Source: Rebecca billardiae RCC1528
Lineage: Eukaryota > Protista > Haptophyta
Reading direction: 5' to 3'
NCBI GenBank assembly: GCA_965240325.2
Contig: OZ251234.1
Coordinates: forward strand, 2,209,568-2,273,567
Length of the DNA stretch: 64,000 bases
The notes under the pieces were generated by a model. That model ran no database searches. It was not told where the DNA came from and saw only the letters and a program-made list of their open reading frames with translations. The stretch's first letter is position 1. Each line of letters starts with the position of its first letter. A program made the position numbers and the translations under genes. This document shows, piece by piece, positions 3,761 to 56,126 of this stretch.

Positions 3761-4028
3761 TCAGACGGACGTCCGATTTGACGACCGGTGCCGGGTGCGG
3801 TCTCAGGTCCGCTGCTGTGATTGTGTGAAGTGTGAATGAGTCTCGCGGTCGCGCAGGCAGGGCGACGGTCGGACTAATATAGCTTCAGTCATCTCAGAAC
3901 CGACTTCAACTGGCGAACTGCCACTACGGCGGAGAGCCGCGATTGCACGGCCACCGCGGGCCCCCAACTGCGTTGATTCTATGCAGAAAAGGACCGCGGA
4001 ACGCGGTCCTTATTATATATATATATAT

Positions 4029-7008
<2,980 letters not shown>

Positions 7009-7015
7009 ATATATA

Positions 7016-8012
7016 TCCCCTTACCGCAGGTTGCTTCTATACGAAGCAAAGATGGGTTCGCCCCCGCGGGTGCGTGCTCGACGGGCAGGTGGACGCCGCG
7101 AGAGGGCGCGCGATGGCTGAGAGGCATCTTCGTGAGCATCTTCGTGGGCCACCCGAGCCTCATCGCCGCCGCCCTCCCCCTCACTCCGGTGCCACGGCGT
7201 CCAAACGGAGTGCCAAACGAGTGTTCGAGCACGCCCAGAAGCAAAGTTTTGAGGGGTGCTCAGTTCGCCTCTGAGGTGCTCGTATCGCTACGGTATGGTG
7301 CCGCACGCGGTACCGCATCAGGCGGGGTGAAGGACGTCATCCGCCGGTCGGCTCTCGGGCTGCCAGTCAGTGCCTGTGGTGCTCGGACGCTGCTCTCCGA
7401 GCTCGAGATCCATCATGCGGCTTCCTGTGTGACGTCGGCAATGAGGAGGGTGTACTTGCGCAGCGGGGCGCGCGCGTCGCGCATGCGATCGAAACCGAAA
7501 CAGACGAAGAAACCTGACCGCCCATCCCGCCGAGCTCCTGGCTGACTTGCACTCGGCAATCACGCCGCGCGCGCGGCCTGCGGCTGCTGCGTGCGGCAAG
7601 CCGCCGAGCGTGTCACGCGCGACTAGCAGGTGAGTGAGTTCAGCGCGACGAGTCAGGTGAACGCGCGCAGACCAGCGCGTGCAGTACGTACACCGCCTAC
7701 AGCCATCTCGACCGATCGCCTACCTGCCTGAAGCAGCTGCAAGGCGTGCAGCCGGGTGTCGCGGGCACACGGCCAGCCTGGCGGGCACGACACGCCCGTA
7801 CGGCAGCTCGGCGCGCTGCCGCGCGATGCCATCGTGGAGGCATTGTAGCTGGAGGGACCAGTCTGGCGGCTGTCTGAGGGTAGCTAGACCATGCCTGCAC
7901 AGTATCATGCGGCGTTCAGCGCCCAAATGCGCCCTGACTGGCCGCAAGGCGCCCTCAGCGGACGCCGTCAACTTTGCTTCCATACGAAGCAAAGTGAACT
8001 GCGGTAAGGGGA
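7016..8012 (+). mobile_element. ~1-kb non-autonomous TIR element (TCCCCTTACCGCAG family, TA TSD; Tc1/mariner-like by TSD)
   Basis: It has a 14-bp TIR, TCCCCTTACCGCAG/CTGCGGTAAGGGGA, with TA on both sides, and subterminal TTGCTTC-N5-GAAGCAA palindromes. A homologous copy lies at 55128-56126. Confidence 0.88.
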
Positions 8013-8014
8013 TA

Positions 8015-8676
8015 GCTACAGGGTGAGCGACGGCCGCAACGGTGCGGTGCGCCACCGCGCGGAACTCGTCCCGCGCGAGCGGCGCAAGCAGCTGCAGCTC
8101 CTCGACCGCGAGGTCTATGGCACGCTTGAGGGCCAGGTGGGCCCATACGAGGCGCGGCTCGACACCTTCCCCGCGATCGTCCCGATTGTCGTGGGGGCGT
8201 TCGGCGAGTGGAGCGCGGAGGTGGACCTCACCCTCAAGAAGATCGCCAAGATGGGGCGGGACACGTGGCGCGCGCGCCTCAGCGCGCCCTCGCGCCCCGC
8301 CGCCGAGCGCGCGCTGCTCGGCACCATGCGGCGCGAGCTGGGCATGCGCTGCCTGCGTGGCCAGGCCAAGATGCTCATCGCCCGCGCGCGCATGGCGCAC
8401 GTGCGCCCGGGGGCACGCGCCCGCGGGGGCACTGCGTACGACGACTGCTTCGAGACGACGGCTGACGACGCGTGGCACCGCGACCACCGCGGTGGCGCGC
8501 GCGCGTCGACGCCAGACGGTGCGTCGAGCTTCCGCTCGGCGATGGAGTGATGGGCGACTACGAGGGGGGGGGACGACGGCGAGGAGCGCTGATCCTGGTG
8601 TTTGTCTCTGCTGCTCGATCTGCCGCTACAGCTTGCTGACTCTTCGGACGCCTGCCCGTTGCATACCACGTCGTTA
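8015..8676 (+). mobile_element. 5'-truncated non-LTR retrotransposon fragment with an RLE-type C-terminus (CRE/R2-group-like)
   Basis: ORF 8023-8550 encodes PIVVGAFGEWSAEVDLTLKKIA...RRELGMRCLRGQAKML, which resembles the tail of restriction-like endonuclease domains. A short 3' region follows and ends in (AT)9. Confidence 0.7.
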
Positions 8677-8694
8677 ATATATATATATATATAT

Positions 8695-9383
8695 GTCTAG
8701 CCACTCCGCCATGCCCGGCTCGTACAAGGCGTCGGGTACGAATGGACTCTGGAGCTGGATGGTCGCGGCGCGCGGCGTCGTGGAGTAGACAGACCACAAT
8801 GATCAATCATGGAACGATCAGGTTAGCTATGTTGGGATTTGAGCAACGAACGACAGCGGGCGCTGGCAGCGGCGTGGCGGTTGAGCTGCTGCCCGAGGTC
8901 GAGAGGGCGCCCGCGAGAACGATGAAGCGTGCGGGTTGACGCGACAGCGGCGAGAGCAAGAGACCATTGCATGAGGGGCGACGCGGCGAAGACAGATGAT
9001 GACGTCGCGCCGCCGAACGATCAGGCGGGGAGCCGGGCCACACAGACAGCCAGCGACCTTACCGAGCAGAGGGGCTGCGGCGACTGCGGTGCACCTCCTG
9101 CAGCGGAGCGTGCACCCGGCAGTGCCCGATGCAGGCGATTCCCTTGCCCAGCTCGGCGCCTTCGTCGTGAGCAGCCCCATGGCGCCCCCGAGAGCGAAGC
9201 CTGATCGATCCGATGTGAGCGGTAACCAACCGAGTCCTGCAGGTGCGCCGCTGTGGGCCAGATTGGCAGCGCACCAGGACTCCTGCGCGCGGCGGTGCGC
9301 ACAGGACAACGCAGGAATGCCGTGCGAGCCGGATTCTTGGCGTCGCTCATAGACACTCAGTTATAGGTTCCCTATAACGCCAC
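8695..9383 (+). mobile_element. TIR-less GTCTAGCC...hairpin-GCCAC element, tandem unit 1
   Basis: It starts right after (AT)9 and ends GTTATAGG-TTC-CCTATAAC-GCCAC. It is near-identical to unit 2. Confidence 0.8.
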
Positions 9384-10253
9384 GTCTAGCCACTCCGCCA
9401 TGCCCGGCTCGTACAAGGCGTCGGGTACGAATGGACTCTGGAGCTGGATGGTCGCGGCGCGCGGCGTCGTGGAGTAGACAGACCACAATGATCAATCATG
9501 GAACGATCAGGTTAGCTATGTTGGGATTTGAGCAACGAACGACAGCGGGCGCTGGCAGCGGCGTGGCGGTTGAGCTGCTGCCCGAGGTCGAGAGGGCGCC
9601 CGCGAGTCCCGTTTATAAGTTGGAGCGGGCGTCCAAGTAGTCGTTGATGAATCCCGTTTAGAAATAGAAGAGACGAGGACTGCGCGGCCGCGCGCGCACG
9701 ATCGATCGCGACGCGCGGCGAGCAGACACGCGTCAGAGTGCGCCGCACCCGCGCGACGCACGGGCGCGAGGCGAGCGCGTATCTCAAACGATGAAGCGTG
9801 CGGGTTGACGCGACAGCGGCGAGAGCAAGAGACCATTGCATGAGGGGCGACGCGGCGAAGACAGATGATGACGTCGCGCCGCCGAACGATCAGGCGGGGA
9901 GCCGGGCCACACAGACAGCCAGCGACCTTACCGAGCAGAGGGGCTGCGGCGACTGCGGTGCACCTCCTGCAGCGGAGCGTGCACCCGGCAGTGCCCGATG
10001 CAGGCGATTCCCTTGCCCAGCTCGGCGCCTTCGTCGTGAGCAGCCCCATGGCGCCCCCGAGAGCGAAGCCTGATCGATCCGATGTGAGCGGTCAACCAAC
10101 CGAGTCCTGCAGGTGCGCCGCTGTGGGCCAGATTGGCAGCGCACCAGGACTCCTGCGCGCGGCGGTGCGCACAGGACAACGCAGGAATGCCGTGCGAGCC
10201 GGATTCTTGGCGTCGCTCATAGACACTCAGTTATAGGTTCCCTATAACGCCAC
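9384..10253 (+). mobile_element. TIR-less GTCTAGCC...hairpin-GCCAC element, tandem unit 2 with an extra 180 bp at 9607-9786
   Basis: It is fused head-to-tail to unit 1 (CGCCAC|GTCTAG) and is followed by ATATAT. Confidence 0.8.
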
Positions 10254-10695
10254 ATATATTATTACTCCTTCGCGCGTCAGCGCGCGCGCAGAGCAGCGGC
10301 AGACGGCGGCGGAGCCGCATCGGCGCATCAATGCGTCTGCTCACACATCGGTCCGAATGGTCCGTCGCCGAGACCGGCCACCGGGCCTGCCGGAATGGTC
10401 GTCATCGTCAGCGCGCGGCCGCTCGGCCACGCGCACTGCGCAGCTGGGCGGGACGGGTAAGCCCACCGGGCAGCAGCGCGTTCGTCGCCATGTCCTCTCC
10501 TCCCTGCGATGGCGCGTGCGCGCGGGACACGGCGTGCGCGTGGGCACGTGGGCGCGGTGCGCGGTGCGCGGTGCGCGGTGGGCGCGCTCGACCGAGCGGT
10601 GCGGGGCTAGGGGAGGGCGGGCGGCAGGGCAGGTCCGGGCTGCGCGCGGTGGCGCGCGCTCGCACGCGCACGCACCCGCCTCGCCCCCGGCCTCG

Positions 10696-41360: not shown

Positions 41361-41416
41361 GGCTGCTACAGCTTGCTGACTCTGACGCCTGCCCGTTGCA
41401 TACCACGTCATCGTTA
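41361..41416 (+). mobile_element. Short copy of the 3' end of the retroelement at 8015-8676
   Basis: GCTACAGCTTGCTGACTCT..GACGCCTGCCCGTTGCATACCACGTC..GTTA matches 8625-8676 and lies between TA tracts. Confidence 0.7.
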
Positions 41417-41434
41417 ATATATATATATATATAT

Positions 41435-43547
41435 GTCTAGCCGTCCTCGCGAACGCCGACGCCAACTGCTGGCCGAAGGTGGGCACGCCGCCTGGCATGT
41501 CGATGCCGAGGCGGCTGCGTAGTGTGTTCCTACTCAGTGGGATTTACGTTAGGTGGGCCCACAGCCATTTAAAAATGAAAACACAATCTCTCTGGCTTTT
41601 TTGGACCGCAGCCGTGCTCTTTTTCTCGCGCTGAAGTCCCTTTTTCCAGGCCGCCAAACTCCCGGTCCGGGAAGCCGGTCGCTCGCGAAAACGATGACCG
41701 GGATCGACCTGTGCGCGTCGTGAGCGCGTTGTCCGCCGCGCTTGCCCGCCTACCATGCGAGGCACGCTGCGCCGCACGCCCGTGGCATACTGCGTAGCCC
41801 TCTGGAACGAGCCATGCGAACGGTTCATCCCTGGGTCATCTTCCCGGTCCGCCATCTCTCGCCGACAGTCGCGCGTTCAAACACCGGAACAGCTTTGAGG
41901 ATTGTAATGCGTGCACAACGCGAGCTTGGGACGCACTCGAATCAACTCGGACACTCTGGAGCGTTACTCGGACAGCATCTGCATGGTATCCTGGCAAGGC
42001 CCAGCTACTTCTGTGGCCCTGCGGAGACCCGCCTCGTGGGTCAGGTCCCCGGAAGTCTGTGCGGTGTGACCGAACGCTGTGGCTGTTCACATGATCGTGG
42101 GCACTTGGGGAAGGATCTGATGGTCAAACAGCGGTCAAAGTGGATGCGTGTGCCGTCTGTTACCTTCCCGGCCTCGACTCAACTCTCAGTGCCGACGCAC
42201 CTCAGGTGTTTGGAAGCTACGAGCCCCTTGGAGGGCCTCGAGCCACACGATTGCACGAGGTCGGGCTGCGCGTCAAGCCGGGTAGATCGCAGCTGATGCG
42301 CTTGTTGAGCCCTGTCGTGGCTCTACGCGTACCTCAAGAGCCCAGCTACTCCCCCCGCGCGGCCGCACAGCAGTCGCCCCGCCTCTGCTTGGTCATCCGC
42401 TGTGCGCCGTGCTCGCTGCGGACAGTACAGTTGATGCGTTCACCAGTGATTTGAGCCCTTCGTGAGCCTGCCCGAGCACGTTGGTGGCGCCGCCGACGCC
42501 GGTGCACGGTCAGCAGGCGTATCAGCTTACCTGCGAGCCATGTCTCGCCCTGCTGCCACGCAGGAAGCGGTGATGAGTGCACATCGCTACGCGCGCGCGC
42601 GCACCACTGCGAGCCAGCTCGGCGCTGCGACGAAGCGGCCGTTGCGCACAGTTAGGCAAAGGACGGTCCAGCTGAGGACAGCTCGGACACAGCTTGGTCG
42701 CAGTGTAGAGCAACGGTTAGGTCGGGGCATGAGAAAAGGCGTTCGATGCATAGCAGTGCCTGCCTTGAACGCCACAGATGAGCTCTCGACGAACCTTGTC
42801 CGCCGTGTTTACGCTGCGGGCTGCTGGATGGGCCCGGCGCCGCGTGCACCACTCCTGCTTGCCTTGACCACGGCGGGCGGGCTGGCGCCGCGACTCGGTG
42901 CGGCTCAATCTTTGCCCACGGCTCCTTAAGACTCATCCTTCGAGGGTAGAAGGGTTGGAAAAATTCTTAGATGTCACATGCACGCCGTACGGCTGCTACG
43001 AGAGCAGTCTGAAACAGTCTGAAATACTATGGCAGCCATGCTGATCAGCATGGCGGTGTATATGTAACGCACGGGTGTAACGGCCGTTATCCCGTATTCT
43101 CACAGTGCCCATATACGCCGTATATGTGACAATGGGTGTGCATGCTGCTGAAGACCTATGATCAGCTCATCAAAGTGCTATATCAAAGTGACGTCTGTCG
43201 ACCCTATATATCACGTTTAAGACGCCCGTTACATGGCCGTTACATTGGTCACAGGCCATTTCCAATAAGTAAATAGGACCACCGTTACTCCCTATATTTA
43301 CAGCATGTACCACTGGTTTTTTAACCAGGCAGGCCAGGGGCCATCTCCTGGGGCTGGAATCCAGCCCGAGACGAAAGTATACATCGCGCTACGAGCTCGC
43401 GTTCTGCGTCACTATAATCCCACAGTGGCCAACGTGGGCCCACCTATTTACGTGTCCGCTCCGATGCCTTGGCGAGCGGCAGCAGATGCGGTGGGCATGC
43501 CGCTCGCCGTCGAATCAGCGCAGTTATTGTACCAATAATAACCCCAC
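41435..43547 (+). mobile_element. Short (~210-bp) GTCTAGCC...hairpin-CCCAC element interrupted by a 1.9-kb TIR insertion
   Basis: It starts (AT)9-GTCTAGCC and ends GTTATTG-TAC-CAATAATAAC-CCCAC-ATATAT. Confidence 0.7.
41550..43446. mobile_element. Nested TIR element (TAGGTGGGCCCAC TIR, 7-8-bp TSD; hAT-like?)
   Basis: 13-bp TIRs lie at 41550-41562 and 43434-43446. TTTACGT is duplicated at 41543-41549 and 43447-43453. GC content is lower than in the genes, and no transposase was recognised. Confidence 0.8.
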
Positions 43548-55127: not shown

Positions 55128-56126
55128 TCCCCTTACCGCAGTTCAATCTGCTTCGTATGGAAGCAGATTTGACGGCGGCCGCTGCGCGCGCTTTGCGGCC
55201 CACCCACGCGCGCCTGGGCGTTGAACACGGCTTGAGAGTGTCCAGGCATGGTCTAGCTACCCTGAGACAGCTGCCAGCCTAGTACCTCCAACTTCACCGC
55301 CTCCACGATGGCAACGCGCGGCGGCGCCGAGCTGCCGTCGTGCTGGCTGGGCGCTCGACTGGCCCGCGACACCCGCACTCCTTGCAGCCGCTTCAAGCAC
55401 GTGGGCGACCGACAAAGATGATTGTAGACAGTGTACATACTGCGCGCGTTACTCTGCGCGCGTTCGCATGACCGATCACGCTGAAAGTGCCCAACAGCCA
55501 GTCGCGCGGGACACGCTGAGGCACATTGCTCGCTCCTTTCCTTGCGGCACGCCGCACGCGGTGTGTACACCGAGCGCAAGTCAGGCAGGCGCTTGGCGGG
55601 AGTGGTGGTATCGCTTCTTCGCTTGTCTTGGCGTCGATCGCAGGCGCGACGCGCGTACCCCTCGCAAGTACACCCTCCTCGTGCTCAGTGTCACTCGCGC
55701 GGAGCCCACGGTGAGGGATCTTGAGCTCGAGGTGCAGCGTACGAGTCTACGGGCGCTGAGTAGCAGCCTACCAACCGGCGCACGGGTGACGACCGTCATC
55801 CATTACGATATGATACCCCTCCCAGCCTCACGCCGCAGCCTGAAGATCACCTCCGCAGCGGTTTGAGCACCATTCCAAATCTGCTTCGTGGCATATATAT
55901 ATATATAATATAGTTCAAACGCTCGTTTGGCACTCCGTCTGGACGCCGTGGCACGAGAGAAGGGGAAGGGCGGTGGCGGCGAGGCTTGGGTCATCGATGG
56001 GTATGGTCCCAAAGATGCCCCCAAGCGTGCGCGCGCCCGCTCGCGCCGTCTACCTGCGCGCCCAGCGCTCCCACGCCGCCGCCCACCCAAATCTGCTTCG
56101 TATAGAAGCAGACTGCGGTAAGGGGA
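55128..56126 (-). mobile_element. Second, diverged copy of the TCCCCTTACCGCAG TIR family (TA TSD), in opposite orientation
   Basis: It has the same 14-bp TIR with TA flanks. Internal blocks are shared with 7016-8012 (AGGGTAGCTAGACCATGCCTG and AGGAGGGTGTACTTGCG). Confidence 0.88.

Follow-up and report, generated by a model that had tools for sequence, protein, structure and literature searches.

What kind of mobile element leaves two fused, unequal copies of itself between AT repeats, and how are its ends joined? The locus that raises the question lies at 8695-10253 of a 64,000-nucleotide stretch of DNA from the haptophyte Rebecca billardiae RCC1528 (the window, the whole stretch analysed, with a GC content of 76%). 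An earlier note on this DNA proposed a non-autonomous family that lacks TIRs, targets microsatellites and joins its ends with no target bases between them, and placed it among HUH or rolling-circle transposons. The first part of that description is supported by the observations below, and the family is real, non-coding and apparently young. HUH is no longer the leading reading, since the terminal features of Helitron1, Helitron2 and Replitrons that were tested fail (a G start, a T^A target, end pairing of only 5-6 bp and no terminal direct repeat). In its repeat order the tandem matches split-direct-repeat tyrosine-recombinase retroelements, a reading that had not been considered.

The starts and ends first described are all present. 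GTCTAGCC occurs at 8695, 9384 and 41435, and a hairpin followed by SCCAC closes the elements at 9383, 10253 and 43547 and, inverted, at 4029. Chance does not account for these ends (4 matches in the window against 0.00 expected in 100 shuffles). On one strand the terminal loops are GAA, GGA and GTA, all GNA triloops as claimed; a GNA loop on either strand is found in only 9 of the 109 perfect triloop hairpins of the window, and four of these are family ends. GT...AC termini are read on either strand, and the junction places the insertion point at T^A. The ends thus lie outside the canonical Helitron TC...CTRR pattern, as had been noted, and the Helitron1 rule (5'-TC, CTRR-3', A^T) does not describe them. 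Junction (AC/GT, the slash marking the joint) and target (AT/AT) are both RY/RY. No target bases lie between the units; any duplication within (AT)n would be invisible, and no empty site turned up.

The terminal hairpin, already recognised in the earlier note, is the top of a larger stem-loop that had been missed: its outer stem pairs both ends and closes only across the junction. In the middle tier, the last five bases of one end pair with five bases 30 nt inside the other end. An in-register five-base match of that kind occurs at 0.02% of window positions, and by its pairing the true far end is among the top 1.5% of AC-ending 25-mers. On the minus strand the junction fold has a z score of -4.05 as DNA and -4.51 as RNA, to both of which the inner hairpin contributes, and 0 of 200 shuffles were as stable. 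Over five ends from two species, 97.5% of cells are paired and three pairs have changed on both sides, which bears out the compensatory pairing claimed for the hairpin; 2 of 500 shuffles scored as high, a figure that is not a probability because there are only five related rows. Compensatory changes are also seen in the junction stem between two families (8695-10253 and the element at 4029). It is probable that the ends are recognised in single-stranded, folded form and that they are joined with no target bases in between.

The seamless CCAC/GTCT junction, with no target bases in it, is not an assembly artefact, since contigs of two other studies (runs X1 and X2) cover it. The X1 junction contig corresponds to 9354-9413, with 30 letters on either side of the junction at a depth of 3.8, and the X2 contig spans 9282-9428 with no differences. 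A few positions differ between X1 and the window. In one X1 contig the terminus and its (AT)3 recur beside a different flank, which marks a minimum of one further insertion site. Another observation from X1 is a contig that departs from the hairpin at 9375 into other sequence, perhaps an insertion into the hairpin.

With plus-strand labels, 8695-10253 is an unequal tandem, A(223)-B(466)/A(223)-C(180)-B(467). The fusion of two copies in the original description stands, and the copies are unequal: copy 1 is without 180 bp that copy 2 has at 9607-9786 (segment C). The two B repeats (9787-10253 and 8918-9383) are identical except for one extra C at 10093, which is absent from the X1 contig. On the minus strand, which bears the GNA loops, the arrangement is A1-[180 bp]-B1A2B2, the split-direct-repeat order of Ngaro (Table 1). 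This order is found at 8695-10253 only, and a dimer with a 180-bp deletion would look the same as A1-[internal]-B1A2B2. On inspection, segment C was rejected as an intron (no GT-AG) and as a nested TIR element (no duplication). A solo LTR with TG...CA ends was also rejected, those bases being absent from the junction.

Table 1. Positions in the window of the family members, their parts and their flanks
Positions	Strand	Feature	Basis or remark
4029-4837	+	Second member, probable 809-bp solo	Hairpin, partner and far-end match
8014-8676	+	5'-truncated RLE-type non-LTR retrotransposon, separate from the element	5' border approximate
8677-8694		(AT)9 flank between RLE 3' end and element	Sequence
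8695-8917	-	Repeat A1 (B2 in Ngaro order)	223 bp; far terminus at 8695, reading TAGAC on the minus strand
8918-9383	-	Repeat B1 (A2 in Ngaro order), bears terminal hairpin	466 bp
9338-9400	-	Three-tier stem-loop spanning the junction; AC/GT joint between 9384 and 9383	Fold z-scores
9384-9606	-	Repeat A2 (B1 in Ngaro order)	223 bp, 100% identical to 8695-8917
9607-9786	-	Segment C, unique internal 180 bp, TATA-like motif	No microhomology at borders
9787-10253	-	Repeat B2 (A1 in Ngaro order), starts at hairpin end	467 bp
10230-10248	-	8-bp hairpin, GAA loop, 5 nt inside terminus	Same hairpin at 9360-9378
10254-10259		(AT)3 flank beyond hairpin end	Sequence
41362-41434	+	Last ~55 bp of the same RLE element and (AT)9	Recurs from 8014-8676
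41435-43547	-	Third member, 2113 bp, non-coding	GTA-loop hairpin 43523-43542

The read data of X1 bear on whether segment C was lost from one copy of a dimer. One unbroken A-C-B contig covers 9384-10245 at a depth of 16, and no X1 contig crosses the A/B joint at 8917/8918, though contigs can drop links. These data lean, with moderate weight, to whole A-C-B units, and the pattern fits a plain dimer or circle with a 180-bp deletion private to the 8695-10253 locus. The lack of microhomology at the borders of C, and a diverged X1 relative that loses its match exactly at the end of A, lean away from the dimer of whole units.

The other two members of the window are single copies. The inverted hairpin end at 4029 is confirmed (GGA-loop hairpin 4034-4052, partner GTGTC 4058-4062), and no GTCTAGCC partner for it is found within the window. 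A candidate far end, GACAC, lies at 4833-4837 just before an (AC)n array. Its assignment implies compensatory change at two of five pairs, and an inverted repeat (4074-4084/4811-4821) would form a further lower stem. From these matches the element probably ends at 4837, an assignment of moderate strength given that 11% of AC-ending 25-mers pair as well and that some of the match comes from the (AC)n array. That array is long (4838-5031); it starts directly at the probable far end, and the terminal bases of the element may have been its source. In the member at 41435 the two ends do not pair with each other, and no split repeats were seen; a chimeric origin or decay of the copy could explain this, or end pairing may not be essential. 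A 13-bp inverted repeat (41550-41562/43434-43446), about 100-115 bp inside both of its ends, may be a nested element or subterminal motifs.

Further copies, beyond the additional X1 site, have been detected in a second species, Pavlovales sp. CCMP2436. There the same hairpin end is present in two of five TE-rich loci (L069:9803 and L072:4473), on a new stem of 8 bp capped by a GCA loop; 300 shuffles of L069 gave 0 matches to the end pattern. The L072 copy follows an RY tract and the L069 copy a T/A run. Interiors are unrelated beyond about 40 bp, neither copy shows split repeats in this assembly, which has gaps, and the far ends are ambiguous, with no unique assignment. An apparent far end at L069:1110 was rejected on inspection, as it looks like a copia LTR border. 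No coding partner, RT, RNase H or recombinase was found in the five loci. A TA-duplicating MITE (L069 9833-9999) sits directly after the family hairpin and splits the junction partner, and about 5 kb of minisatellite-like repeats follow the other copy (L072 4889-9759) up to the next RY tract. A reading frame of L073 matches the Pox_A32 packaging ATPase (E 3.6e-05), a similarity that could possibly mark a Polinton-like virus remnant in CCMP2436.

No member encodes a protein or RNA family that could be recognised. Pfam searches of 78 reading-frame pieces of the element regions gave no transposase, RT or recombinase; Atlas searches of two ORFs and Rfam likewise gave none of these and no ribozyme; and no RT, RNase H or recombinase was found in any member or nearby. 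The Rep or recombinase frames that the earlier note proposed to look for in the longest copies are not recognisable by Pfam, Atlas or Rfam. A Penelope-like reading is disfavoured by the same null results on the element regions. Pattern scans of metagenome, viral and prokaryote contigs returned 62 matches; none is a relative, since they have lower GC, no complete hairpin and no similarity to the window.

The immediate neighbour at 8014-8676 was assigned to the RLE type from a homologous C-terminal domain in proteins that carry RVT_1, and it has relatives in CCMP2436. Its homologues, when traced into metagenome contigs, led to short contigs only; when traced into CCMP2436, they led to the two family ends and no coding partner. 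Both outer GTCTAGCC ends are preceded by the RLE 3' end and exactly (AT)9 (8622-8702 and 41362-41442), and the RLE variant at 41362 matches the X1 consensus at two positions. Under random pairing among the TA tracts of the window this adjacency has p 0.005-0.04, a range to be read with the non-independence of nested insertions. It may reflect shared targeting, one element targeting the other, or 3' transduction in which the tail and 8 further bases were carried along.

Between 4014 and 10259, unrelated elements form a nested stack within TA tracts. For example, 58-bp perfect inverted repeats (5024-5081/6959-7016) bound a TIR element of ~2 kb between TA tracts, and related non-coding TIR elements of ~1 kb with similar terminal repeats are found at 7017-8011 and at about 55128-56126. 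A separate 10-bp hairpin with a GAA loop (3989-4011) ends one base before a TA tract; its end grammar is different, and it is possibly a Helitron-type end. Elsewhere in the window, an open frame of 8289 codons with an 11-kb proline-rich repeat (15727-40596) probably encodes a giant surface protein. A Patched-like protein of the host shares 59% identity with one from a cluster that includes a Pavlova sp. CCMP459 sequence; together with the CCMP2436 relatives of the RLE element, this makes a haptophyte of the Pavlovophyceae the probable source.

The explanation that we hold to be somewhat better than even is that these are non-autonomous Ngaro/PAT-type tyrosine-recombinase elements and their solos. 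The element at 8695-10253 behaves as a split-repeat recombinase element, and its class membership we infer from layout and ends. Read on the minus strand, it would be a miniature element of the order A1-[180 bp]-B1A2B2, with the elements at 4029 and 41435 as solo or recombined forms, and RT and recombinase would come from an autonomous partner. The internal B/A junction would serve as template for a joined-end intermediate, whose junction would fold into a GNA-capped stem-loop. Exchange of AC/GT with AT/AT in the microsatellite would follow, carried out by the recombinase and leaving no visible target duplication.

Several observations point this way. Repeat order and identity match the published A1-[ORFs]-B1A2B2 order of Ngaro and VIPER, for which solo AB forms have been described (PMC8547959, PMC6681497). 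Junction and target are both RY/RY with no target bases between units, and the stem is closed only across the junction, with compensatory changes between the two families. The HUH terminal rules fail, and DIRS-type cDNA is single-stranded, the specificity of its recombinase having been left open (PMC7192593). Against the Ngaro/PAT assignment stand the absence of an enzyme, the X1 sample without the A/B joint, the other copies without split repeats, and a junction without the 3-bp target identity of DIRS1-like elements.

A distinctly less probable reading is that of non-autonomous, Helitron2-like HUH rolling-circle elements, with 8695-10253 as a head-to-tail dimer whose copy 1 has a 180-bp deletion. 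The plus-strand 5' GTCTA would then be a short asymmetric inverted repeat, with its partner ~30 nt from the 3' end, before the hairpin. That position does match the Helitron2 geometry (PMC3627910), in which the 3' repeat lies 20-30 bp from the end and upstream of the hairpin (here partner 9350-9354, end 9383). In Fusarium Helitron2, GAA-loop hairpins are present, joined ends have been amplified and tandems occur (PMC5148889). The whole A-C-B units and junction in X1 and the unrelated interiors of monomers also suit it, and HUH is still a live rival because no enzyme was found. However, the inverted repeat of Helitron2 is 8-15 bp, and here it amounts to 5-6 bp (5 Watson-Crick pairs and one G-T) in two members and to nothing in the third. 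The junction fixes G rather than T as the first base, and insertion is at T^A where T^T or A^T would be called for. At the end opposite the hairpin, element 1 shows no significant 5' hairpin (fold z -0.33); the corresponding end of element 3 folds at z -1.8 to -2.2, and the two have nothing in common. No RepHel is found in the window.

A tyrosine-recombinase DNA transposon of Crypton type, excising or copying as an AC/GT circle with no RNA step, is an unlikely source of the family. It would account for the lack of TIRs and of a visible duplication, for the joined ends and for the occurrence of both monomers and dimers. Cryptons, however, have flanking direct repeats of 4-6 bp that match the target (PMC13465315, PMC9977147), whereas junction and target of the family share only RY/RY; no recombinase was seen. 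More doubtful still is a system built on a single-strand transposase, whether Replitron-like, IS200/IS605-like or undescribed. Hairpins with a GNA cap are well suited to recognition as single strands. A conserved hairpin at one end only counts against such a system, as does the failure to find an enzyme. Replitrons have one subterminal palindrome and are probably present in haptophytes (PMC10288648), but they also have short direct terminal repeats, which the family lacks. Chance motifs or an assembly artefact are scarcely credible, and for the ends and the junction they are excluded: only three loci are present in the window and the additional base of copy 2 could be an error, but the shuffles gave 0 matches, the junction and a second insertion site are found in other runs, and the same end occurs in a second species.

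The end pattern can be used to annotate these repeats in Pavlovales genomes, whatever the mechanism. If the partner were a RepHel, this would be a Helitron2 family with unusual ends, of less interest. End joining and target choice of split-direct-repeat retroelements have hardly been tested so far, and these elements are short enough to single out a candidate cis-signal, about 60 nt long and conserved by covariation in both species, along with (TA)n as a simple target. With them, the hairpin of a single strand and the duplex circle can be set directly against each other as substrates. A bolder and quite tentative proposal is a Pavlovales-wide tyrosine-recombinase lineage whose substrate would be the folded single-stranded junction, recognised by its shape like attC, with RY/RY exchange with a (TA)n duplex and no crossover identity. 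If so, any DNA between two matching ends would be movable, with or without an RNA step. At the integron attC and CTX phage attachment sites a tyrosine recombinase acts on a folded single strand, and shape matters more than sequence. These are bacterial systems, and they are cited as analogy only, with no homology claimed.

Among known eukaryotic elements, the likenesses are divided. Replitrons share the lack of TIRs and differ in having a Rep and fuzzy ends, those of the family being sharp. Cryptons are also TIR-less and insert by exchange without true duplication; the structured ends of the family set it apart. DIRS1-like elements have ITRs and a 3-bp junction identical to the target, whereas the family has no ITRs and sets AC/GT against AT/AT. 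With Helitron2/Helentron (HLE2) elements such as FoHeli it shares terminal pairing ~30 nt from the other end beside a hairpin, the GNA loop, joined ends and unrelated interiors. The likeness to Ngaro, PAT, VIPER and SIRE lies in the A1-[internal]-B1A2B2 arrangement with identical repeats of a few hundred bp (PMC8547959, PMC6681497, PMC9210276), and for Ngaro, PAT and VIPER also in an internal junction that joins both termini, the lack of TIRs and the solo forms. In contrast to those three, the element has no ORFs, its internal part is only 180 bp, and one sample is without the A/B joint. No description of a junction stem-loop or of (TA)n targeting for split-repeat elements was found in the literature covered, which included few subscription journals. 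Within that literature, what distinguishes the family from Ngaro, PAT and VIPER is this covarying, GNA-capped stem-loop at the junction, together with its (TA)n target.
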